This document shows, piece by piece, positions 1 to 44,000 of a stretch of 64,000 nucleotides of DNA. The translations under genes were made by a program, and so were the position numbers. How positions within the stretch are numbered: position 1 is the stretch's first letter; every line of letters begins with the position of its first letter. This stretch comes from Zygnema circumcarinatum SAG 698-1b (lineage: Eukaryota; Plantae; Zygnematophyceae), in assembly GCA_037447605.1 (NCBI GenBank), contig CM074811.1, forward strand, positions 2,976,001-3,040,000. Direction: 5' to 3'. The notes under the pieces are model-generated. The model was not told the origin of the DNA. It did not search any database and saw nothing but the letters and a program-made list of their open reading frames with translations.

Positions 1-139
1 CGCGTCCTCGTTAAGTGTCACGTCACGCACACGGACGTGTTGTCGCTGCTCGACTCCGCCGCATTCACTTGAGCATTCTTTCCACGTCACTTTTGCTTGT
101 GCTGCAAACATGGGCCAGATTTGTGAAGCCTTTCTTTTT

Positions 140-2570
140 CTGATTTTGGCAGAAGCTTGTATGGTAATACCCTAACAGGGTCTATCCCGAATTCTATCGG
201 AAACCTTGCGAATCTACAAACATTGTAAGTATTTTTCCCCTTAAATCTGAAATGAAAGTGATAGAAATGCCAGACAGAGGAATGACAGTGATAGAAATGC
301 TATTCGTGGCAGCATGTTTATTCAGTGCCTTATTTTTTTTATTTTTGGCAGATCCTTGGCTTCTAATTCCCTAACTGGATCTATCCCGGATTCTATCGGC
401 AACCTTGTGAATCTGCAAGGCTTGTAAGTATCTTTCCTCATAAATATGAAATGAAAGTGATAGAAATGTTAGACAATGAAATGCCAGTGATAGAATTGCT
501 AGTAGTGGAAGCATGTTTATTCAGTGCCTATTTTTTAATTTGGCAGATCCTTGGCTTCTAATTCCCTAACGGGGTCAATCCCGGATTCTATCGGCAACCT
601 TGCGAATCTGCAAGACTTGTAAGTTTTTTTTGTCAATAAATCTGAAATGAAAGTGATAGAAGTGCTAGTCGTGGCAGCATGTTTATTTAGTACGGGGTCT
701 TTTTTTTTTTTTTTTGGCAGAGAATTGGTTTTTAATTCCCTAACGGGTCCTATCCCGGATTCTATTGGCAAGCTTGCGAATCTGCAAGGATTGTAAGTAT
801 ATTTCCTCGTAAATCTGAAATCAAAGTGGTAGAAATGTCAGACAGAGGAATGCCAGTGATAGAAATGCTAGTCGTGGCAGCATGTTTATTGAGTGCCTAC
901 TTTTTTATTTTTTGGCAGATACTTGTATGGTAATTCCCTAACAGGGTCTATCCCGGATTCTATCGGCATCCTTGTAAATCTGCAAGCATTGTAAGTATTT
1001 TTCCCAATAAATATGAAATGAAAGTGATAGAAATGTTAGACAATGAAATGCCAGTGATAGAATTGCTAGTAGTGGAAGCATGTTTATTCAGTGCCTATTT
1101 TTTAATTTGGCAGAGATCCTTGGCTTCCAATTCCCTAACGGGGTCAATCCCGCATTCTATCGGCAACCTTGTGAATCTGCAGTACTTGTAAGTATTTTTC
1201 CTCATAAATCTGAAATGAAAGTGATAGAAATGCCAGACAAAGGAATGCCAGTGATAGAAATGCTAGTCGTGGCAGCATGTTTATTGAGTGCCTACTTTTT
1301 TATTTTTTGGCAGATACTTGTATGGTAATTCCCTAACAGGGTCTATCCCGGATTCTATCGGCATCCTTGTAAATCTGCAAGCATTGTAAGTATTTTTCCC
1401 AATAAATATGAAATGAAAGTGATAGAAATGTTAGACAATGAAATGCCAGTGATAGAATTGCTAGTAGTGGAAGCATGTTTATTCAGTGCCTATTTTTTAA
1501 TTTGGCAGATCCTTGGCTTCCAATTCCCTAACGGGGTCAATCCCGCATTCTATCGGCAACCTTGTGAATCTGCAGTACTTGTAAGTATTTTTCCTCATAA
1601 ATCTGAAATGAAAGTGATAGAAATGCCAGACAAAGGAATGCCAGTGATAGAAATGCTAGTCGTGGCAGCATGTTTATTGAGTGCCTACTTTTTTATTTTT
1701 TGGCAGATACTTGTATGGTAATTCCCTAACAGGGTCTATCCCGGATTCTATCGGCATCCTTGTAAATCTGCAAGCATTGTAAGTATTTTTCCCAATAAAT
1801 ATGAAATGAAAGTGATAGAAATGTTAGACAATGAAATGCCAGTGATAGAATTGCTAGTAGTGGAAGCATGTTTATTCAGTGCCTATTTTTTAATTTGGCA
1901 GATCCTTGGCTTCCAATTCCCTAACGGGGTCAATCCCGCATTCTATCGGCAACCTTGTGAATCTGCAGTACTTGTAAGTATTTTTCCTCATAAATCTGAA
2001 ATGAAAGTGATAGAAATGCCAGACAAAGGAATGCCAGTGATAGAAATGCTATTCGTGGCAGCATGCTTATTCAGTGCCTAATTTTTTAGTTTTGGCAGAT
2101 CCTTGGCTTCTAATTCCCTAACAGGATCTATCCCGGATTCTATCAGCAACCTTTTGAATCTGCAAGGCTTGTAAGTATCTTTCCTCATAAATCTGAAATG
2201 AAAGTGATGAAAAATTCAGACAGAGGAATGCCAGTGATAGAAACGCTAGTCGTGGCAGCATGCTTATGCAGTTCCTATTCTTTTATGTTTGGCAGATTTT
2301 TGGCTTCTAATTCCCTAACGGGGTATATCCCGGATTCTATCGGCAACCTTGTAAATCTGATAGGATTGTAAGTATTTTTCCCCAGAAAACTGAAATGAAA
2401 GTGATAGAAATGCCAAGCAGAGGAATGCCAGTGATAGAAATGCTAGTTGTGACAGAATGTTAATTCAGTGCCTAGTTTTTATACTTCTGGCAGACACTTG
2501 GATTTTAACTCCCTAACGGGGTCTATCCCGGATTCTATCGGCAACCTTGCGAATCTGCAAGATCTGTAAG
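140..2570 (+). repeat. Tandem array of 13 exon+intron modules (~174-199 bp), including a ~393-bp two-module unit repeated 3 times (about 919-2000)
   Basis: Exon start spacings are 199, 195, 174, 198, 197, 198, 195, 198, 195, 197, 197, 198. Introns are near-identical (GTAAGTATTTT...AAATGAAAGTGATAGAAATG...GTGATAGAA...GCAGCATGTTTATT...TTTTGGCAG). Confidence 0.97.
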
Positions 2571-5145
2571 TATTTAAGAAGCTGAAAGCCCCTCTCCCCG
2601 TATCAGATCGCACTGATGTGTCGAGAATCTTTGAACCAATCACGTCGTAGTGCCAGATACGCTTCAGATTCTTTCCTGCGCCATTCCTCCGATCTGTACG
2701 CTGCCGTACCGTACTCTCGTACTTCCTCCTGCCGGTGCCGGCCTGCGAGCGGCCTGTCGCCGGGCGGCGCCCACCCGCCCTTGAGAGGACCCGTGTCGTG
2801 TCACCCCAACTGCGCGTGTCCCTTGGCGACATCTCCTCCTCCATGCCACGCTGCGCAGAGCCCACCGCACCCTCCCCCATCCATGGAGGAGGAGGTGCCG
2901 TGAAGCTTCTCATTGGTCGATTGGCACGGGGCAACTTCGAGCTTCGGTTTGCATTTGAGCAATCATCCAACTGAGTTTCATTTTTTTTTTTTCCGCAAAA
3001 CATTTGCCGAGCTAGTGAAGCGTTTTATGAAGATCGGTGGATGCTAATTCACATGCAGACGCTTTACTAATTTTGAACGGCGTCATCCCGAACTCTATTG
3101 GGAACCTCGCGAGTCTGTATGAATTAAAATGGTTTTTTTTCTGAAATCATAAGTGCAATAACTTCTTGCATCTTACAAAGCAGCAAATTTCGATGTCGTG
3201 TATCCATGATTGCATGGAAAATGTTTGCCGCGTAGTTTTTTTCACTTCTGGTGTTTATATGCGAGTAAAATTTTAATCTCGCACTGCGCGTTTTTGAGAC
3301 TGCGTTTGAGAATTCGACTACAGAACGTGGAGTTGGATACCTGATTTATTCCTTTTCAGTCCAGAACAAACTTTGTCCTTGTCGTTACGTGTGTCTGCAG
3401 GTATTTGGGCAACAACAAACTGGAGGGGAGAGTGTCCGGCTTCATCTCTAAACTCACCCGACTGCAGTACCTGTAAGCACCGCTGCATCGATAACATTGT
3501 ATTCGCCCTTTGAATTTTTTCTCCCGGCCGAGCATTTGCACCTCTCAAACTACTACATTTATATCGCGCTTGGATGAGTTTTAAATTTATCTCATATTTT
3601 TGGTCACTTCTGTCACAGCGCGGGCTATTTTGACGCACAATAATGCACACTTTTGCATGCGAGAGATTACACATCGTTGTTGAGTGTTTAGGATTTAGAG
3701 TTTACGGATTGAGGTGGGGTTTAAGTTTTAAGATTGTATGTCTTAAAGTTCGAGGGGTTTAGGGGCTTATGAGTTAAAGGATTTAGTAGCGATGGGGCTT
3801 TAGTGGGTTCAACGTTTAAGGGATTGCAGGTTGAAAGGTTTATGGGAAGGGATTAGAGATTTAGGGGTTCATTGTTTGAGGACATGTGATGGACATAGGG
3901 TTGTGAGAGGGAGTCGAAGTCCTTGCAGAGAGCACAAGCGAATGTTTTCAGTGTCGGTGACACAAGAAAGACTCAAAGGGTTCTGTTGGAAATCTCCTCC
4001 CTCTCTCTCTAATGCGCCACCGTTAATGTCACCAGGGACTTAAACAACAACAAGTTGACAGGCTCCATAGCTCTTCTGAGCTATAACTACCTTTATAAAG
4101 TGGAGATCCAAGGCAACTACTTCTCCGGGCCAATCAACATTACAATTGTTGGTCGACCTCACTGCTACTCCAACTATACCAAAAACTGCATTTATCGCGA
4201 TATCACAGGATGTGGCGCAGCTCAACAACAGCAGAGACCTCCGCAAGAGTGCGCGGCCTTCTGCCAGAGCGATTCTCCCGAGGGAGCGTGCGGGGGCCGC
4301 GGCACGTGCGGGTACGACACGGCCACGTGCACATGCGACAAGGGATATGCGCTGGCATCCGGCACGTGCGGTGAGTTGCAACCTGCTGCTTGTAGATACT
4401 CGCAAGAAAGGAAAAGTAAAAGGGTGGTATAGGTTGTGGAAACTATCGCATGGCTATCAACTTTTACACTGTCGTTGCTGTTAGAGCACACTGAATGCGA
4501 TCCATGTGATTCCGCCAATAGGAGAGATTCAATTCTCGACCTTCTAGAAGCACATGGCAAGTATTACTTGGTGAACTCTGCAAGCCCATTCAAAAAATGG
4601 TGCAGAGTTTATCAGGAAATATCGAGAGTGCTTCTCCGATACCATGGTCGTAGCTTTCAATCAATTTTCTAGACCCAATCCAATCCCGTGCAAGCTACAA
4701 CATATCTCGTCTACATTTTCACGAGCTAGATAACCTGCGAGTTTGACCTTGCTCCTCTTCAAAGAGAAAATTGCGTAGCCGGAGAAATGACACAGGAATC
4801 TGATTTTCCGTGGAGATGCATATAGCTTGAGATGCACATACATGATGAAATATGACGTTCAGAAGTCTTGAAGTTAGTTTATTTTCATTTTGAAGGGTTT
4901 TCATTTCGTTCTGCATCCTCCCAAAACGTTTGTAAGGACGTGTTTCGATTAGAATATGTAAGCTATGGAAGAAGTGAGTTCGTCTGTAATTATGAACGGG
5001 AACTCACACAATGCCCTGCATTCTTGCAGCTTCACGATCCCCTCCTCCCCGTCCTCGGCCCCCTTCGAAAAGTCCCCCTCCACGTAAGCCTCCTCCCAGC
5101 CGTCGACCCCCTCCTCGACGTCCCCCTCCGAGCCGTTCTCCTTGA
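153..5145 (+). CDS. Multi-exon LRR protein (5' end outside the window): at least 14 single-LRR exons, a Cys-rich/EGF-like exon and a Pro/Arg-rich extensin-like C-terminal exon; no TM or kinase domain seen
   Basis: 72-nt exons flanked by CAG/GTAAG, phase 2-2, at 153-224, 352-423, 547-618, 721-792, 919-990, 1116-1187, 1314-1385, 1509-1580, 1707-1778, 1902-1973, 2099-2170, 2296-2367, 2494-2565 and 3401-3472. Each encodes a 24-aa plant-type LRR such as SLASNSLTGSIPDSIGNLVNLQGL. Exon 4036-4371 gives DLNNNKLTG...QRPPQECAAFC...CGGRGTC...CTCDKGYALASGTC. Exon 5030-5145 (phase 1) gives ASRSPPPRPRPPSKSPPPRKPPPSRRPPPRRPPPSRSP-stop. Confidence 0.88.
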
Positions 5146-5495
5146 GCCCCTCCTCCCGTTACCGATGCTGGTACTCTTCGCCTTGTCCCTTGACACCTCC
5201 TATGGCTGCTGCTGCTTACTGTTGCAGTCTATTTCCTGTCTTCCTTCTGATCATTTTGGAATGTATAGATTCGACTTTGCACAATCGTTGAAATTGATTT
5301 ACTTTGTTTGTTATCATTAGGCTATCTGATGGGAAGTTAAAAATTTAAAAAAAAACGAGAGATCCGTTATGATCCTCTTCACAAGACACGAAGCGTTATC
5401 TTATTGCATCAAATTCCTAGGGAGGTCACTGCATTCAAATAACGGATTCTTTTCATACTCCTCCACTCGTTTTCCCCTTTACTTTCAAGATTCAC

Positions 5496-6604
5496 CTTTC
5501 TTCATCGGCCTGCTCCTGACGGGCTCCTCTGCATGCAGGCGTGCCTTGAGGGGGCCATGGGGCGCGTGATGCTTCTCCTCCATCCTCCGCACTTTTAGAG
5601 GAGGAGGTGGTCAAAACTTGCTATGGCTCTACAGTAGTGCGCGTACCTGCACATGCATGGCATGACGAGGTAGTGGACGCACCATGGTAGTGGTATGCAC
5701 AGTGGATGCATAAAGACACGCTTGGGGGATGGATGAATGTTTTGTCGTCGGCTTTGGTTTCTCGTTGGCCTTGCGGCCTCATGCAGACAGTCGATCGCTC
5801 TCCTTGGTTGGGCAGCAGACCATGTTCGCGTCTCTGTCGAGAATATGTGACAAGTTGAAAATGATGCCAAGGAATGTTGTGAGCTGTCTTTGCTCAGAAG
5901 TCGGAATATTGTCATCTTCATTTTGATGTGCGACATGTCACGTCACGTCACGAGTGCACCCGCGGACGAGGCCAAACCAATTCCTTTTTCTTTAGGGCTG
6001 CGTACTTGAGTGGCGATTGTGTGGAGCATTCGCGGCAGCAGTCATTCGGAAGGATACGTTGGAGAGCGTGGCAGCGCATCGCTCGTGGTTTTGGAGGAAC
6101 AAGAGTTTGCTCATAGCCGCTTTCAAAAACTGTCGCAGGCGAGAAAGTTTCCACAGGACGATTTAAGAGCGTTTCTTTCATCAAAGCGTCCGCAAGTCAT
6201 TTCAGCACCACTCCAAAAACATAAAAAAAATGAAAAAACAATAAAATCGAGAAAACTCATGCTCTTCTTAGCGTACAATCCTGAATAAAAATAAAAATAA
6301 AAATAAAAATTGTCTGTTAAATTTGTTCAAAAAATATGCAGAAAGTTTTCAAAATTGGTCCCCCCCCGTGTTCCCAAACCCCTCACAAAGCTGACGTCGG
6401 CCGCCCCTTCAAGGAGCCGAAGAGCGCCTGCGATCGCTTGAACGCGTACGGATCCAAAATAATTTCTCCCATACCCTTCAAAATTTCTGAGCCCTCCGCC
6501 TCACTTTTTTCGACTGCCCCCTCGTCACATGCCATCGCTGCAGCGCCGTTCAACGGCCCAACTGTGCCCTTCCCTTGCATGGAACCGCCGCCCTTTAGCA
6601 GAGA
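5496..6604 (-). other. Possible fragment of an unidentified minus-strand spliced gene left of the 100-N gap
   Basis: Candidate exons with AG/GT boundaries (e.g. 6427-6387) can be joined as ...MACDEGAVEKSALRLLEGAADVSF..., but I recognise no family and the downstream frame is ambiguous. Confidence 0.25.
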
Positions 6605-6704
6605 NNNNNNNNNNNNNNNNNNNNNNNNNNNNNNNNNNNNNNNNNNNNNNNNNNNNNNNNNNNNNNNNNNNNNNNNNNNNNNNNNNNNNNNNNNNNNNNN
6701 NNNN
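6605..6704. other. Scaffold gap (100 N) truncating the insulysin-like gene
   Basis: Run of 100 N; the sequence on either side does not continue the same gene. Confidence 0.95.
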
Positions 6705-7600
6705 GGGAGGGGAGGAAAAATGGAGGAACCAGAAAGATGGTGGAGAATGGGGAGAGGGATGGAAGGGAGGGGGAGGGGGAGGGGAGGGGGAGGGGAGGGG
6801 GAGGGAGGGGAGGGGGAGGGGAGGAGGGGGATGGGGGAGGGGAGGGGGAGGGGAGCGGGAGGCAGAGCGGGAGGGGGGGAGGGGCAGGGAGGGAGGCATG
6901 CCCAGGGGAGGAGGGGAGGGGGAGGGAGGGGAGGCAGAGACAGGAGATGAGACAAATGGGATGCAAGAGTGTGTAAGGAGAGGGGAGCGGGGCAAGAAGG
7001 AGAGGGGAGGAGGAGGGGAGGGGGAGGGGAGGGGGAGGGGGAGGGGGGAGGCGGGAGGGGAGGGAAGAGAGGGGAGGGGGAGGGGGAGGGGGAGGGGGGG
7101 AGGGGAGGGGGAGGGGATGCAAAGGGGAGGGGGAGGGGGAGGGAGGGGGGAGAGTGGAGGGGGAGGGGAGAGGAGGAGGGGAGGGGGAGGGGGAGGGGAG
7201 GGGGAGGGGGTGGGGGAGGAGGGAAGGGTGGGGGAAGGAGGGGAGGGAGTGGGGGGAGGGGAGGGGGAGGGGGAGGGGGATGGGGAGAGGGGGGAGGGGG
7301 AGGGGAGGGGGAGAGGGAGGGGGCGGAGGGATGGGGAGGGGACACGAGGGGGAGTGTAGATGGAAGGAGATGCAAGGAGCGAAGGTTTTGGATGCGAGGG
7401 GAGGGGGAGGGGGGAAGAGAGGGAGGGGAGGGGGAGGGGAGGGGGAGGGGGATGGGAGGGGAGGGGTGGGGGGATGGGGGAGGGGGAGGGGAGAGGGGAG
7501 GGGAGGGGGGAGAGGGAGGGGAGGCCCAGAGGCAAGAAGCACGCAGACAAGGGGAGGGGAGGAGAGGGAGGGAGGGGAGGGGGAGGGGAGGGGAGGGAGC
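6705..7600. repeat. ~0.9 kb polypurine (G/A) tract, intronic
   Basis: Almost pure GGGGA/GGGA sequence; source of the poly-Pro and poly-Gly/Glu ORFs in the track. Confidence 0.95.
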
Positions 7601-12206: not shown

Positions 12207-13847
12207 ATGCTGCGTAGTTGCATCCGCTCTCTCCGACCCTCATCTCTCCCTCTGTTTTCTACCTTTTCCGAGACTCCACCTTATCTCCCCCGCCGCACCC
12301 TCAACAAAATCAGCTGCATATTCAGTCCCAAGAAAGACCCACCCGCCATGGCTGCCCACTCAAGAGCTACGCAGCAGCACAAGCTCGCCTCCGCCCTCGC
12401 TCACGCCGCCATAGCCATCCCCTCGGCCGAGTCCCTGAAGTCCCTCTCCATGCAGGTGGAGCGTTTCCCTGTAGTTCTACTGGGCGAGGCCTCCCATGGA
12501 ACTTCGGACTTCTACCGCCTGCGGCAACACCTCTCCCGCTCCCTCCTGCGAGAGAGCTCTCCCGTCCGCTTCCGCTTCATCGCGGTGGAAGGCGATTGGC
12601 CCGCCTGCTACGCCGTGCACCGCTACGTGACACGTGGCATCGGCGGCTCGGCGGAGGCTGTTCTGAAGGCGGAGTTCAGGCGGTGGCCGCCATGGATGTG
12701 GGCCAACCGAGAAATGGTTGACTTTCTTGACTGGCTAAGGGCACATAACAGCCAGCTGGCGCCCTATGATAGGGTGGGTTTTTTTGGGCTGGACGTGTAT
12801 TCCCTGTACGAGTCGATTGAAGCTGTTGTGGAGGAGCTCGGCCACGTGGACCCTGCTATGGCGGAGGAGGCTAAAAGGCACTATGCATGCTTTGACAGAG
12901 TGGGAGGAGGGGATGAGAAAAGGTACACACGCTCTCTTTTATTTCGACCGGAGGGGTGTAGAGAGCAAGTGATTTCTGTGCTCAGGAAGCTTCTGCGAAA
13001 GAAGATGCCGGTACATGATGGGGATTCTGATGAAGATCCGAACGATCCCGACAGTCATATTTTCAACGCAAAGCAGAATGCAATAGTGGTGAAAGATGCG
13101 GAGAATTACTACAGAACTATGGTGTTGGGGGATGGGGAGTCGTGGAATGTGAGGGACTATCACATGGCGGATACGCTGCAACGGCTGATGCATGCTTACG
13201 CTAGCTGTGCAACGAAACGGGGCGGAACGGACACAAAGAAACCGGTGGGGGCGATAGTGTGGGCTCACAATACCCATGTGGGGGATCATAGGTTTTCGGA
13301 TATGATGAAGAGAGGGGAAATTACGATTGGGGGAGTGATGAGAGAAAGAGTGGGAGAGGAAAATGTGTGTCTTGTCGGGTTCGGAACATACAGAGGAAGT
13401 GTGATTGCTGCTCGGGATCAGTGGGGAGACCCTCCGAAAGTTCTGGAAGTTCCGCCGGCAGTTTCTGGAAGCTATGATGACGTCATGAATCGAGTGAGCC
13501 TGCAGCAGAAGATGCCTGTGTGGTATGTGATGTTCCGGAAAGATGACGTGGAAGTGAAGGAAAGGATGGGAGGAGAGAGCAAGGAAAAGGAAGGAGAGGG
13601 GAAAGAGGAGAAGGAGGAGAAGGAGGAGGTAGATTTCAGAAAGGAGTTTGGAGATTTTACGGCCGGGCAGCGTGCGATGGGTGTTGTTTACGATCCCAGA
13701 ATTGAGTTTTTGGGGAATTATGTTCCATGTCAAATTGTGAAGCGGTATGATTCGTTCGTTTTTGTTCATACCTCGAGAGCTTTGAAGCCCTTGGCAGCAA
13801 AAGTTGACCCTACGGAAGTGCCGGAGACGTACCCTACCGGCGTTTGA
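12207..13847 (+). CDS. Erythromycin esterase (Ere/ChaN-like) family protein, intronless, with a putative organellar transit peptide
   Basis: 546-aa uninterrupted ORF. Family motifs VVLLGEASHGTSDFY, FIAVEGDWP, WPPWMWANREM, GFFGLDVYSL, ESWNVRDYHM, VWAHNTHVGD and GQRAMGVVY. The N-terminal ~48 aa are Ser/Arg/Leu/Pro-rich and nearly free of acidic residues. Confidence 0.9.
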   Translation: MLRSCIRSLRPSSLPLFSTFSETPPYLPRRTLNKISCIFSPKKDPPAMAAHSRATQQHKLASALAHAAIAIPSAESLKSLSMQVERFPVVLLGEASHGTSDFYRLRQHLSRSLLRESSPVRFRFIAVEGDWPACYAVHRYVTRGIGGSAEAVLKAEFRRWPPWMWANREMVDFLDWLRAHNSQLAPYDRVGFFGLDVYSLYESIEAVVEELGHVDPAMAEEAKRHYACFDRVGGGDEKRYTRSLLFRPEGCREQVISVLRKLLRKKMPVHDGDSDEDPNDPDSHIFNAKQNAIVVKDAENYYRTMVLGDGESWNVRDYHMADTLQRLMHAYASCATKRGGTDTKKPVGAIVWAHNTHVGDHRFSDMMKRGEITIGGVMRERVGEENVCLVGFGTYRGSVIAARDQWGDPPKVLEVPPAVSGSYDDVMNRVSLQQKMPVWYVMFRKDDVEVKERMGGESKEKEGEGKEEKEEKEEVDFRKEFGDFTAGQRAMGVVYDPRIEFLGNYVPCQIVKRYDSFVFVHTSRALKPLAAKVDPTEVPETYPTGV

Positions 13848-37332: not shown

Positions 37333-40100
37333 CAAAACACGCGGCACGATGCTATTGACTTCAGCCGAATCACGACTTTATCAAGCATATCAGTAATCGC
37401 GAAATTTGGCCTCGATAAAGTTATACAGTTCCGTACCGCACTCTCGAAAATTTTGAGCCGTCGACCTCCGCCTCCGTCACCCCCGGCCGCTGCCGTACAT
37501 GTCTCCCTCCCTCCCTGCCATTGGCCTCTGACTCCCTCGCTCTCCCATAGACATGTCTCTCGCGTGAGCTTTTTCTCTCCACCATTGAACCCTCTCGCTC
37601 TCTCTCCGTGCTATTGACCTCTCTCTCTCTCTCCCTCCCTCTCTCTCTCACTGTCATTGATCTCCCTATCTCTCTTTCTCCCCACTATTGACCTCTCTAT
37701 CTCTCTCTCCCTCTCTCTCCCATTGCCATCGATCTCTCTATCTCTCTATCTATCTTTCTCCCTAATATTGAACTCGCTCTGTATCTCTCTCTCCCTTTCC
37801 CAACTGTCATTGATTTCTTTATCTCTCTTTCTCCCCAATATTGACCCCTCTCTCTCTCTCTCTCCCCCCCTGCCGTTGACCTCTTCCTGTCTTTCTCCTA
37901 TCTTCCTTCTGCTTTAAAGGCATGGCAGAGACCGTGGTCCCTGTATCCCCTCTCCCTGCAGTCCTGCCCTCCCCCGAATGGCCCGTCGTCCCCGAGTTCC
38001 TTATTTCGAGTTCCGCACTCACGGCCGGACTTGCTTGCAGATGGCTCCAAACAGTTTCTTCCTTTTTGGCAGCCACTGCGTTGATTAGCAGCCACTGATG
38101 ATGCCACTCCCACACTTTCTCCCACAGCCACAGCCTCTCTCCCTTCATGGCGGTCGTTACGGGGCGCAATTTGCGGAAAGTGTTCGTGACGGAGCTTATC
38201 CTCCGAGTCCTGCAGACCGGCTGTGCGATTATTGCGATCATCTTCATGGTGGACCTCACCAAGTGCTACGGCTACAGCACCTTCAAATACGTCACCGGGT
38301 TCAAGTACGCACGGAATATGGGCTGGCCCTGGTAGTTGGAGGGGGGGGGAGGGGGGAAGGGGAGAGGGGGGTACAGCAGGATTGAGGTCTGCACTTTGGG
38401 GGAAATGTATGCGTGTATGAATGCATGTATCATGCGCGTATTTTTTTTTTATTAGCGGTTTATGTGTATGTTGGTATGCCTGAGCATTCGCGCCATGGCA
38501 GGTACCTTGTGGGCACCGCCGGTATTGCGGCGGGATGGGCCTTCGCCATGCTCATTGTGGCAGGCATCGGAGCGGCCTCCAGGAAGGACCCCATGGGGAG
38601 TAGGAATGCCGCGATGTTCCGGCTCGCTGCAGACATTGTAAGTGGTTGGAAGGAGGGAGGGAGAAAGGGGGCCGGGGGGGAAGGGGAGAGAGGAGAGGGG
38701 AGAGGGGAGAGNNNNNNNNNNCAAAACACGCGGCACGATGCTATTGACTTCAGCCGAATCACGACTTTATCAAGCATATCAGTAATCGCGAAATTTGGCC
38801 TCGATAAAGTTATACAGTTCCGTACCGCACTCTCGAAAATTTTGAGCCGTCGACCTCCGCCTCCGTCACCCCCGGCCGCTGCCGTACATGTCTCCCTCCC
38901 TCCCTGCCATTGGCCTCTGACTCCCTCGCTCTCCCATAGACATGTCTCTCGCGTGAGCTTTTTCTCTCCACCATTGAACCCTCTCGCTCTCTCTCCGTGC
39001 TATTGACCTCTCTCTCTCTCTCCCTCCCTCTCTCTCTCACTGTCATTGATCTCCCTATCTCTCTTTCTCCCCACTATTGACCTCTCTATCTCTCTCTCCC
39101 TCTCTCTCCCATTGCCATCGATCTCTCTATCTCTCTATCTATCTTTCTCCCTAATATTGAACTCGCTCTGTATCTCTCTCTCCCTTTCCCAACTGTCATT
39201 GATTTCTTTATCTCTCTTTCTCCCCAATATTGACCCCTCTCTCTCTCTCTCTCCCCCCCTGCCGTTGACCTCTTCCTGTCTTTCTCCTATCTTCCTTCTG
39301 CTTTAAAGGCATGGCAGAGACCGTGGTCCCTGTATCCCCTCTCCCTGCAGTCCTGCCCTCCCCCGAATGGCCCGTCGTCCCCGAGTTCCTTATTTCGAGT
39401 TCCGCACTCACGGCCGGACTTGCTTGCAGATGGCTCCAAACAGTTTCTTCCTTTTTGGCAGCCACTGCGTTGATTAGCAGCCACTGATGATGCCACTCCC
39501 ACACTTTCTCCCACAGCCACAGCCTCTCTCCCTTCATGGCGGTCGTTACGGGGCGCAATTTGCGGAAAGTGTTCGTGACGGAGCTTATCCTCCGAGTCCT
39601 GCAGACCGGCTGTGCGATTATTGCGATCATCTTCATGGTGGACCTCACCAAGTGCTACGGCTACAGCACCTTCAAATACGTCACCGGGTTCAAGTACGCA
39701 CGGAATATGGGCTGGCCCTGGTAGTTGGAGGGGGGGGGAGGGGGGAAGGGGAGAGGGGGGTACAGCAGGATTGAGGTCTGCACTTTGGGGGAAATGTATG
39801 CGTGTATGAATGCATGTATCATGCGCGTATTTTTTTTTTATTAGCGGTTTATGTGTATGTTGGTATGCCTGAGCATTCGCGCCATGGCAGGTACCTTGTG
39901 GGCACCGCCGGTATTGCGGCGGGATGGGCCTTCGCCATGCTCATTGTGGCAGGCATCGGAGCGGCCTCCAGGAAGGACCCCATGGGGAGTAGGAATGCCG
40001 CGATGTTCCGGCTCGCTGCAGACATTGTAAGTGGTTGGAAGGAGGGAGGGAGAAAGGGGGCCGGGGGGGAAGGGGAGAGAGGAGAGGGGAGAGGGGAGAG
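37333..40100. other. Exact 1389-bp tandem duplication (37333-38711 and 38722-40100), each copy ending at a 10-N gap; probable assembly artefact
   Basis: Identical ORF sets offset by 1389 nt in the track; both copies break at the same GA-rich position. Confidence 0.8.
39311..39487 (+). pseudogene. Relic / uORF CASP-like first exon upstream of paralog 3 (duplicate at 37922-38098)
   Basis: 58-codon ORF MAETVVPVSPLP...ALTAGLACRWLQTVSSFLAATALISSH-TGA-TGA resembles paralog 1 exon 1 (MAETAVP...VVAASLRAAQVVLSFVALIVMATAS). Confidence 0.5.
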
Positions 40101-41090: not shown

Positions 41091-44000
41091 CTACTTTACG
41101 GGACTGAGCCCAAATTTCCGTCGCACGAGTCCGTTTAACTGAGGCCATCTGTCGTATCCGTGAATTACGGCAAATGGCCTCTCGCCCATAGAAGTGACCA
41201 CATTTCCTCCCACAATAATAAATGGCGCTTTTATTCTAAAAATGGTCAAAACCGGACCCCTCTCGTTGCTCTCCAATTTATGGCGCGGGAGAGACATCCT
41301 CAGCCTCCCTGAAAGGACACACGGGCCAAAAAAGAAATTAATATTTTATTTTTTCAAGTTGACTTTTTTTTCCGGGGGAGGTGGGGGTGGGGGAGGGGGG
41401 AAGGGGAATTGTGGTTACAGGGTTTGTAGGATTTTCTGGGGTCAGAAAGGTTTGAAAGGTTCACTTTTCCATGGCGGAAGGGTCTTAAGATGTTTGGGAA
41501 TTATCTTAGTCTAATGCTTAGCAAATTAGAGGGCTTCAGCACATGTAGAATATAAAATCTGCAGGTTCTAAAAAACCTCAACATTCCTGTACAAAAGTAA
41601 CCTCCTAAAGGCCAAGTAACTGTTCAATCCAACAGAAAAATGCTGCTGCCCTCTCCCTCCCTGCTTCTCTCTCTACCTGCACCCTCTCTCCCTCTTCCTC
41701 CCTCCCTCCCTCCCTCCCTCCCTCCCTCCCTCCCTCTCTCTCTGTCTCTCTCTCAGTTCCCCAAAAATAACTTTCCTATCCACTCACCTGATTTGATCAC
41801 GTGATTCAAGGTGGCCTGGTCGGCTCCAAAATTTCTCAAACAATATTTTGGGACGCGCGAAAACTCGACTCTCATGTCATTGAGAAGAAGTAAAACTTTC
41901 GAAGTTGGGCCCAAAATGAAGCCCGAACTGATCACGTGCGTGCCTCCGTAGGTCCATGCGATCCGTTCCGTAAAACAGCGCATCATCCACTGCCAGTTAT
42001 CCATCAGTTGGTCGCGCGCAACGGACGTGTTTGAGGGGTATATAGTCGACTCCTGAATGGGTACAAATGGGGTATTTGATTAAAGGAAGGGGGGAAGGGG
42101 AGAGAGGAAGGAGGGAGGGGGAGATGGGAGGAAGGGGGGAAGGGGAGAGAGGAGGGAGGGAGGGGGCGATGGGAGGGAAGGGGGGAAGGGGAGAGAGGAA
42201 GGAGGGAGGAGGTTGTGAGGGAGGGGGGAAAGGGGAGAGAGGAAGGAGGGAGAGGGGGAGGGGAGTGGGGAGGGAGAGAGGGAGAGAGGGATAGGAAATG
42301 CCCGAAGTGCTTCGTTCCAGTTCTTCACCCACTTCGATTTCCTTTTTCTTTTTAGGTTATTTTGGGCACCTGAAAGAAGTGAAGCTCGCTGTCGGGCAGC
42401 GCGTCAAAAGGATCTCCCAAAAAGGCGACGTCAAGGGAATCGCACAAAAGAGAAGTTCCGTTGTGGGCGGTCACTTTGAGAAATAATTCGAACACCAAAA
42501 ATCGTTCAATCCAGAACCCTAAATTAGAGTTCCGCCCTGCAAAGAAGCGGAGGAAGGCGAAGTGAAATTGTGAGGGGGGGAGGGGAGTGAATGAGAGGAA
42601 GGAGAGAGAGGGGCGGAGAGAGGGNNNNNNNNNNGGGGGGGGGAATTGTGGTTACAGGGTTTGTAGGATTTTCTGGGGTCAGAAAGGTTTGAAAGGTTCA
42701 CTTTTCCATGGCGGAAGGGTCTTAAGATGTTTGGGAATTATCTTAGTCTAATGCTTAGCAAATTAGAGGGCTTCAGCACATGTAGAATATAAAATCTGCA
42801 GGTTCTAAAAAACCTCAACATTCCTGTACAAAAGTAACCTCCTAAAGGCCAAGTAACTGTTCAATCCAACAGAAAAATGCTGCTGCCCTCTCCCTCCCTG
42901 CTTCTCTCTCTACCTGCACCCTCTCTCCCTCTTCCTCCCTCCCTCCCTCCCTCCCTCCCTCCCTCCCTCCCTCTCTCTCTGTCTCTCTCTCAGTTCCCCA
43001 AAAATAACTTTCCTATCCACTCACCTGATTTGATCACGTGATTCAAGGTGGCCTGGTCGGCTCCAAAATTTCTCAAACAATATTTTGGGACGCGCGAAAA
43101 CTCGACTCTCATGTCATTGAGAAGAAGTAAAACTTTCGAAGTTGGGCCCAAAATGAAGCCCGAACTGATCACGTGCGTGCCTCCGTAGGTCCATGCGATC
43201 CGTTCCGTAAAACAGCGCATCATCCACTGCCAGTTATCCATCAGTTGGTCGCGCGCAACGGACGTGTTTGAGGGGTATATAGTCGACTCCTGAATGGGTA
43301 CAAATGGGGTATTTGATTAAAGGAAGGGGGGAAGGGGAGAGAGGAAGGAGGGAGGGGGAGATGGGAGGAAGGGGGGAAGGGGAGAGAGGAGGGAGGGAGG
43401 GGGCGATGGGAGGGAAGGGGGGAAGGGGAGAGAGGAAGGAGGGAGGAGGTTGTGAGGGAGGGGGGAAAGGGGAGAGAGGAAGGAGGGAGAGGGGGAGGGG
43501 AGTGGGGAGGGAGAGAGGGAGAGAGGGATAGGAAATGCCCGAAGTGCTTCGTTCCAGTTCTTCACCCACTTCGATTTCCTTTTTCTTTTTAGGTTATTTT
43601 GGGCACCTGAAAGAAGTGAAGCTCGCTGTCGGGCAGCGCGTCAAAAGGATCTCCCAAAAAGGCGACGTCAAGGGAATCGCACAAAAGAGAAGTTCCGTTG
43701 TGGGCGGTCACTTTGAGAAATAATTCGAACACCAAAAATCGTTCAATCCAGAACCCTAAATTAGAGTTCCGCCCTGCAAAGAAGCGGAGGAAGGCGAAGT
43801 GAAATTGTGAGGGGGGGAGGGGAGTGAATGAGAGGAAGGAGAGAGAGGGGCGGAGAGAGGGAGAAGGGGGGGGAAGAAGGGCCGGGAGGGAAAACTTGTG
43901 GGAAAGATAGGAAGGGGAGGGGAGGGAGGAAGGAGGGAGGAGGAGGGAGGGAGGGAGGGAGGGAGGGAGGGAGGGAGGAGGGAGTGGGAGGGAGGGAGGG

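Follow-up and report, generated by a model that had tools for sequence, protein, structure and literature searches.

The stretch of DNA analysed here (hereafter the window) comprises 64,000 nucleotides (nt) of the streptophyte alga Zygnema circumcarinatum SAG 698-1b (GenBank assembly GCA_037447605.1, contig CM074811.1, positions 2,976,001 to 3,040,000, forward strand), and near its beginning it carries a head-to-tail array of leucine-rich repeat (LRR) exons that forms the middle part of a longer gene. Reading positions 1-3600 for GTAAGT donors and GGCAG acceptors, we located 13 exons of exactly 72 nt each between 153 and 2565 on the + strand (Table 1), with GGCAG abutting the exons on their 5' side and GTAAGT on their 3' side. 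Each array exon consists of 1 nt, 23 codons and 2 nt, which places the introns in phase 2. Translated from the second base, the exons are free of stops and follow the pattern x-L-x-x-N-S-L-T-G-S-I-P-x-S-I-G-N-L-x-N-L-Q-x, and the codon shared across each junction always encodes Leu, being made of the exon-final TT (CT in E13) and the first base of the next exon, A (G at 3401). Since all 13 exons have this length and phase and a Leu at every junction, any subset of them stays in frame, as an earlier sequence-only reading of this DNA had maintained, and keeps the junction Leu. The same reading had described 13 modules, each made of a 72-nt phase-2 exon and an intron of about 125 nt; the exons and their phase stand, whereas the introns number 12 and measure 102-127 nt, I3 carrying a deletion of ~24 nt. 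The 12 array introns are all related to one another and unrelated to the outer introns that lie beside the first and last array exons, and the identity matrix separates two main types, alpha (I2, I5, I7, and I9) and beta (I1, I4, I6, I8, and I10). Their donors and acceptors are all strong and nearly identical.

One plant-type LRR of 24 residues is encoded by each array exon: the translations fit LxxLxLxxNxL(T/S)GxIPxxIGxL in 13 of 13 cases, and the Pfam profile LRR_1 matched all seven array exons that were scanned singly (profile positions 6/7-21/23, E values of 0.007-0.16 each). Tandem Repeats Finder recovered the same organization as a period of 198 nt present in 12.5 copies (81% matches) and a higher-order period of 393 nt in 4.8 copies (92% matches). 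In a six-frame motif scan of the window, this LRR form was found at the 13 array places only. The sequencing runs containing this DNA consist of assembled contigs, not raw reads. Two of them, X7 and X11, were classed as RNA-like on the basis of contigs that lie on exons only and are connected by GT..AG joints, and two others, X1 and X4, are DNA runs.

Table 1. Exons, introns, and related features of the LRR gene, in window positions
Feature	Position	Strand	Basis or remark
LRR exon E1, SLYG type, 72 nt, phase 2	153-224	+	Covered exactly by RNA-like contigs X7 rec 24 and X11 rec 9
LRR exon E2, SLAS	352-423	+	96% identical to E11; position 376 under contigs of the same depth as those of E1
LRR exon E3, SLAS	547-618	+	93% identical to E6
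LRR exon E4, ELVF	721-792	+	Splice-site and frame reading
LRR exon E5, YLYG, type A, first copy	919-990	+	Identical to E7 and E9
LRR exon E6, SLAS...QY, type B, first copy; acceptor AGAG	1116-1187	+	Frame reading and identity comparison
LRR exon E7, same sequence as E5	1314-1385	+	Identity
LRR exon E8, same sequence as E6	1509-1580	+	Identity; X1 DNA contig 1402-1595
LRR exon E9, same sequence as E5	1707-1778	+	Identity; RNA joint 1778>1902, GT..AG
LRR exon E10, same sequence as E6	1902-1973	+	Identity; X7 rec 25, depth 237
LRR exon E11, SLAS	2099-2170	+	X11 rec 10: E11 directly joined to E12
LRR exon E12, FLAS	2296-2367	+	Joint 2367>2494, GT..AG, in X7 and X11
LRR exon E13, HLDF, last of the array	2494-2565	+	Joint 2565>3401, GT..AG, in X7 and X11
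Array introns I1-I6	225-351, 424-546, 619-720, 793-918, 991-1115, 1188-1313	+	Within span 225-2493
Array introns I7-I12	1386-1508, 1581-1706, 1779-1901, 1974-2098, 2171-2295, 2368-2493	+	Within span 225-2493
Tract of three 393-nt A-B units	846 to ~2051	+	Identical save AG at 1114-1115; ends in beta-type introns
Decayed 58-nt LRR exon relic (...N-G-V-I-P-N-S-I-G-N-L-A-S-L), in an 835-nt intron	3059-3116	+	3085-3112 86% identical to E1; skipped by joint 2565>3401
Diverged 72-nt phase-2 LRR exon	3401-3472	+	Joint 2565>3401, GT..AG, two runs
Exon with last LRRs and Cys-rich EGF-like cap	4036-4370	+	Pfam EGF_2 and EGF_Teneurin below threshold; 7 invariant Cys in 8 sequences
Last coding exon, 38-residue basic Pro-rich tail, SPPP/RPPP	5030-5145	+	TGA at 5143-5145; X11 loose end at 5029 matches 4360-4369

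The module copies have changed at strikingly different rates depending on the class of site. When the fewest changes required per site are counted across nine distinct module copies, the exposed codons show 21 changes at 12 sites (1.75 per site), the third positions of scaffold codons 12 at 19 sites (0.63), the first and second scaffold positions together 12 at 41 sites (0.29), and the introns 55 at 123 sites (0.45). Exposed codons have thus changed 3.9 times faster than the introns (p=1.9e-6), whereas scaffold third positions do not differ from them (p=0.28). Pairwise estimates agree with these per-site counts, giving a ratio of non-synonymous to synonymous differences (pN/pS) of 1.65 for exposed and 0.36 for scaffold codons. 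Amino acid variation peaks at codons 1, 3, 4, and 23 of the exon, corresponding to the x residues of LxxLxLxx. The proposal that exon differences gather at the exposed xxLxLxx positions over a nearly fixed scaffold is therefore borne out, including the residue strings on which it had been based. The fast sites occupy the first 13 and the last 9 bases of each exon and, being placed at both exon ends, they imply that each xxLxLxx beta-strand is encoded across a splice junction. Positive selection would be the cause of these fast exposed sites.

The introns had been described as about as conserved as the exons and, among the nine distinct copies, the mean p-distances are indeed close (0.169 for exons and 0.132 for introns). 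The exons seem as diverged as the introns because slow scaffold sites are averaged with very fast exposed ones. A special conservation of the introns was rejected, as the intron rate of 0.45 is not below that of scaffold third positions. The array introns are young and roughly neutral. We also looked in them for functional elements: no inverted repeats were found in the array, none of the four introns that were folded had a stable structure (z between -0.4 and +0.6), and an Rfam scan of positions 1-6000 at a permissive threshold gave no match in the array and one chance-level match outside it. An intron-encoded RNA or a Dscam-like pairing code was rejected on these grounds.

The array also preserves a record of its own copying. 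A two-module unit of 393 nt (E5-I5-E6-I6, here A-B) is present three times without substitutions, since E5-I5-E6-I6, E7-I7-E8-I8, and E9-I9-E10 are identical except for an extra AG at 1114-1115. The identity begins 73 nt before E5 and E7, within the preceding intron, and stops 345 nt into the third unit, again within an intron. The remaining modules are less alike, with identity matrices giving 74-96% for exons and 76-98% for introns, and the relationships among exons disagree with those among introns. For instance, I2 and I5 differ at 3 of 123 sites and their flanks by 7-15%; I4 and I6 differ at 6 of 126 sites and E4 and E6 at 17 of 72; I1 and I10 differ at 8 of 125 sites, E2 and E11 at 3 of 72, and the next introns at 19 of 123. 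A mosaic of this type is expected when misaligned modules repeatedly undergo unequal crossover or conversion. Together with the ends of the triplication inside introns, it agrees with the suggestion that whole modules were copied in this way, and the recent triplication of an A-B pair is confirmed by the three units without substitutions. As far as can be judged from the letters themselves, crossover would be the mechanism by which the array grew. The first copy of the B exon (E6) has an acceptor that reads CAGAG, the additional AG being absent from the other two B copies. Splicing of E6 at the first AG (1112-1113, the stronger CAG) would produce a 74-nt exon with an in-frame TAA after 7 codons; the extra AG represents an indel of the assembly, an allele with a weak acceptor, or a disabling mutation.

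The gene continues on both sides of the array. RNA-like contigs over E1 run 198 letters upstream into an LRR exon (...I-G-N-L-T-K-L-T-Y-L) situated outside the window; this continuation, seen as a loose RNA end at 153, implies that the gene starts before window position 1, and any signal peptide consequently lies outside the window too. Downstream, the Pfam profiles EGF_2 and EGF_Teneurin match the C-terminal exon with E values of 0.002-0.006, below threshold, and the Pro-rich tail that follows contains two SPPP and three K/RPPP motifs, no Tyr, and no Pfam match. Contigs of the 3' untranslated region (X11 recs 12-15) pass the stop codon unspliced and reach 5600. Past 5549, the contigs of both DNA runs share foreign letters in place of the window sequence, and similar letters follow a jump at 5171 in an X7 contig; this suggests a paralogous or alternative 3' end. 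Neither a hydrophobic membrane span nor a kinase was found before the TGA at 5143-5145, and the ROC-COR GTPase tandem is absent from the region C-terminal to the LRRs, where the EGF-like cap, the Pro-rich tail, and the stop codon are found instead. The earlier designation of the product as a receptor goes too far for a reading frame that ends in this manner. The product is a kinase-less LRR protein that is probably either secreted or wall-bound, with a putative binding role for its LRRs.

Searched exhaustively with a profile of the 111-residue C-terminal exon, 1.84 billion representative proteins yielded only 23 relatives (P0001-P0023), the best of them with 40% identity (E value of 1e-8). They have in common the last LRRs and seven invariant Cys (alignment A1, 8 sequences). 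P0002, P0011, and P0014 extend beyond the cap into a Pro-rich stalk and then a membrane span and a protein kinase, P0001 stops after the Pro-rich tail as this gene does, and P0017 is intronless in two NCBI assemblies. The Cys-rich EGF-like cap (4037-4369) defines a small family with an LRR / EGF-like / Pro-rich ectodomain, of which the gene is a kinase-less member. In the Atlas, the C-terminal exon led to nothing beyond weak LRR leads, and scanning metagenome contigs for the exact pattern of the exon scaffold returned 0 matches.

Considering what was directly observed (module anatomy, splice joints, triplication, rate differences, and C-terminal architecture), we think it highly probable that the array is the middle of an expressed kinase-less LRR gene in which modules were copied in the germline and the exposed face then came under diversifying selection, and whose exons are spliced consecutively. 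The parts of this gene would be, in order, at least three upstream LRR exons, the 13-exon array, one diverged LRR exon, the EGF-like Cys-rich cap, and the short basic Pro-rich tail. The array would have grown in the germline through repeated unequal crossover or replication slippage between near-identical exon-plus-intron modules, for which the introns and the conserved exon scaffold would have supplied the homology. Its latest event would be the triplication of the 393-nt two-module unit, with breaks inside introns. After copying, the scaffold codons (N-S-L-T-G-S-I-P-x-S-I-G-N-L) would have been held by purifying selection and the introns would have drifted in a roughly neutral manner. The four exposed codons per beta-strand, straddling the splice junctions, would have changed ~4 times faster, pointing to diversifying selection on the binding (concave) face. 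All exons would normally be spliced in, one after the other. Several points weigh against this scenario. The rate tests use nine short sequences of mosaic relationship, the sites of which are not fully independent, and the fast exposed codons could represent old exon differences kept by selection while conversion homogenised the introns, which would still be selection for diversity with another history. In addition, the AGAG acceptor may shift the frame of this allele if its first AG is used, the N-terminus of the protein lies outside the window, and rare skipped isoforms are invisible in assembled contigs.

The depth of the DNA runs bears on whether the array still changes in length. In X1, the contig 1402-1595 inside the A-B unit has a depth of 211, compared with 66-74 for single-copy contigs, which corresponds to three copies. 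In X4, the bins that hold only the unique parts of the A-B unit have depths of 0-36, compared with 38-55 for single-copy bins; this fits about one A-B copy but amounts to a lead and not a result, given that contig extents are unknown and that each multi-mapping contig is assigned to a single site. The binned depth over 936-1870, which fits ~3 copies in X1 and, at 19.5-36 per bin, ~1 copy in X4, may reflect a copy-number difference between strains. X4 comes from a different genotype, with five single-nucleotide polymorphisms at 2665-2713, in a 50-nt stretch of the long intron, and X1 has A for T at 376, a position where the RNA-like runs agree with the window; more than one genotype is thus represented among the public runs. 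If the A-B triplication were polymorphic between strains (13 versus ~9 modules), LRR arrays of this kind could constitute a fast-turnover recognition repertoire, with near-identical introns as recombination substrates and hypervariable beta-strands re-paired whenever modules are gained, lost, or skipped, a streptophyte counterpart of the shuffling of brown-algal ROCO genes. We regard this broader view as improbable. Improbable too is a high-turnover array whose module number and order differ between strains or cells, generating binding-domain diversity at the population level or somatically. The substitution-free triplication, the mosaic history, and the lower A-B depth in the other genotype speak for it, but per-bin contig depth is weak evidence, the joints listed for the DNA runs include no other module order, and there is no pointer to a dedicated enzyme. 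In addition, blastn-short and a loose LRR motif scan of the 64 kb on both strands detected no orphan or reverse-strand cassette and, as the only further copy, the coding-strand relic in the long intron. Donor-cassette models were rejected for the window.

A further alternative would move the diversity from the genome to the transcripts: the cassettes would be alternatively spliced by skipping, so that a single gene gave rise to many combinations of LRRs, a scheme put forward for brown-algal ROCO genes. The exon design would allow it, given that every skipped form would remain in frame, and brown-algal genes of the same design have several annotated splice variants. However, the GT..AG joints listed from the two RNA-like runs (1778>1902, 2367>2494, and 2565>3401) all connect neighbours and none skips an array exon, and one RNA-like contig holds E11 and E12 side by side. 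The depths in X7 are 82 for E1, 112 for E11, and 237 for the E9-E10 junction, which is common to the three A-B copies; a triplicated junction at two to three times the depth of single-copy exons fits a constitutive inclusion of all three copies. With uniformly strong splice sites and introns devoid of pairing elements or folds in addition, the idea of diversity through exon skipping is very unlikely to hold, and we saw no sign of a programmed diversification system. Other joints, such as 418>2326 and 610>929, were rejected as splicing, having no GT..AG ends and foreign letters between their sides. They derive from paralogous LRR transcripts with the same scaffold sequence. Many further contigs display the same scaffold letters with different variable letters, which implies that a large family of expressed paralogues exists. 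Finally, that the three A-B units are one unit over-expanded by the assembler is hardly credible, despite their perfect identity over ~1.2 kb, the gap in the scaffold at 6605-6704, and a lone AG indel that could be a consensus error, in view of the 3.0-fold single-copy k-mer depth of the X1 contig (tempered by the fact that X1 may stem from the assembled strain) and the two- to threefold depth of the RNA junction contig.

In land plants, subfamilies of LRR receptor-like kinases such as SERK / LRR-II also encode plant-type LRRs of 24 residues in one 72-nt exon each, separated by phase-2 introns; their introns are old and mutually unrelated and their exons are not recent tandem copies, and the gene described here differs from them as well in having no kinase. 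In tomato, Cf-2 and Cf-5 are said, in the work of Dixon et al. from 1996 and 1998, to contain alternating near-identical A and B LRRs whose number varies between alleles, reportedly as a result of unequal crossover, with variation at the solvent-exposed xxLxLxx positions. Those genes are reportedly intronless and encode membrane-anchored receptor-like proteins, whereas here each LRR is its own exon and the introns are part of the homology. LRX (LRR-extensin) proteins present an LRR region, a Cys-rich region, and a Pro-rich SPPP tail in the same order, but the tail found here is basic, has 38 residues, and has no Tyr cross-link motifs, and the Cys-rich part is EGF-like and shared with algal receptor kinases; the likeness to LRX is one of part order. 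Dscam-type mutually exclusive exons are unlike this array, which has no complementary intron elements and in which neighbouring exons are joined in RNA, and VLR-type somatic assembly is equally unlike it, since its cassettes act as spliced exons within a complete reading frame and no orphan cassettes were detected in the window.

Published arrays of this kind come from brown algae and Tetrahymena. The LRR-ROCO type I genes of the brown algae Ectocarpus and Saccharina have 72-bp phase-2 LRR exons, LRR exon shuffling and duplication with positive selection on the concave face, several splice variants, and inactivated LRR exons inside introns (PMC3341825, PMC11378527). The comparison with Ectocarpus offered by the sequence-only reading was thus apt: both have a single LRR in each 72-nt exon, introns in phase 2, duplicated exons, and variation on the concave face. 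They differ in that the Zygnema gene encodes plant-type extracellular LRRs with an EGF-like cap and a Pro-rich tail after them instead of ROC-COR, forms a clean head-to-tail series with near-identical introns, has a single decayed exon and none on the opposite strand within 64 kb, and reveals no splice variants among the RNA joints listed. In the ciliate Tetrahymena, tandem arrays of equal-length 90-bp LRR exons show an extreme phase-2 bias and a shared junction codon, young arrays are still alike in nucleotides, and unequal crossing-over has been proposed as the mechanism; thousands of genes are involved, and a retrotransposon may have played a role (PMC6564038). Tandem exons of equal length, phase 2, the shared junction codon, and the resemblance at the nucleotide level are common to both, in contrast with the exon length (72 nt here), the LRR class, the number of genes, and the possible retrotransposon. 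No paper describing such arrays in Zygnematophyceae or any other streptophyte algae turned up in our literature search. The locus is a streptophyte case of the kind published for brown algae and ciliates, a textbook example and not a new mechanism.

Its interest lies in showing that duplication of exon-plus-intron modules still lengthens LRR domains in a plant-like alga, with the introns serving as an internal neutral yardstick against which the ligand-facing codons evolve about four times faster. Should the copy number vary between strains, the array would provide a convenient marker of the speed at which a binding surface is reshaped and would inform our view of the diversification of extracellular recognition proteins before land plants.

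Several other features of the window were noted. The scaffold gap consists of 100 N and is followed by ~0.9 kb of purine-rich low-complexity DNA of GGGAGG type (6705-7600), and GA/CT-rich tracts recur across the window. An intronless open reading frame at 12207-13847 matched only bacterial erythromycin-esterase clusters in an Atlas search. Two pairs of direct repeats of at least 300 nt, 99-100% identical, are situated at 37333-37632 and 38722-39021 (1389 nt apart) and at 41398-41697 and 42635-42934 (1237 nt apart); both stem from recent local duplication and have no relation to the LRR array.

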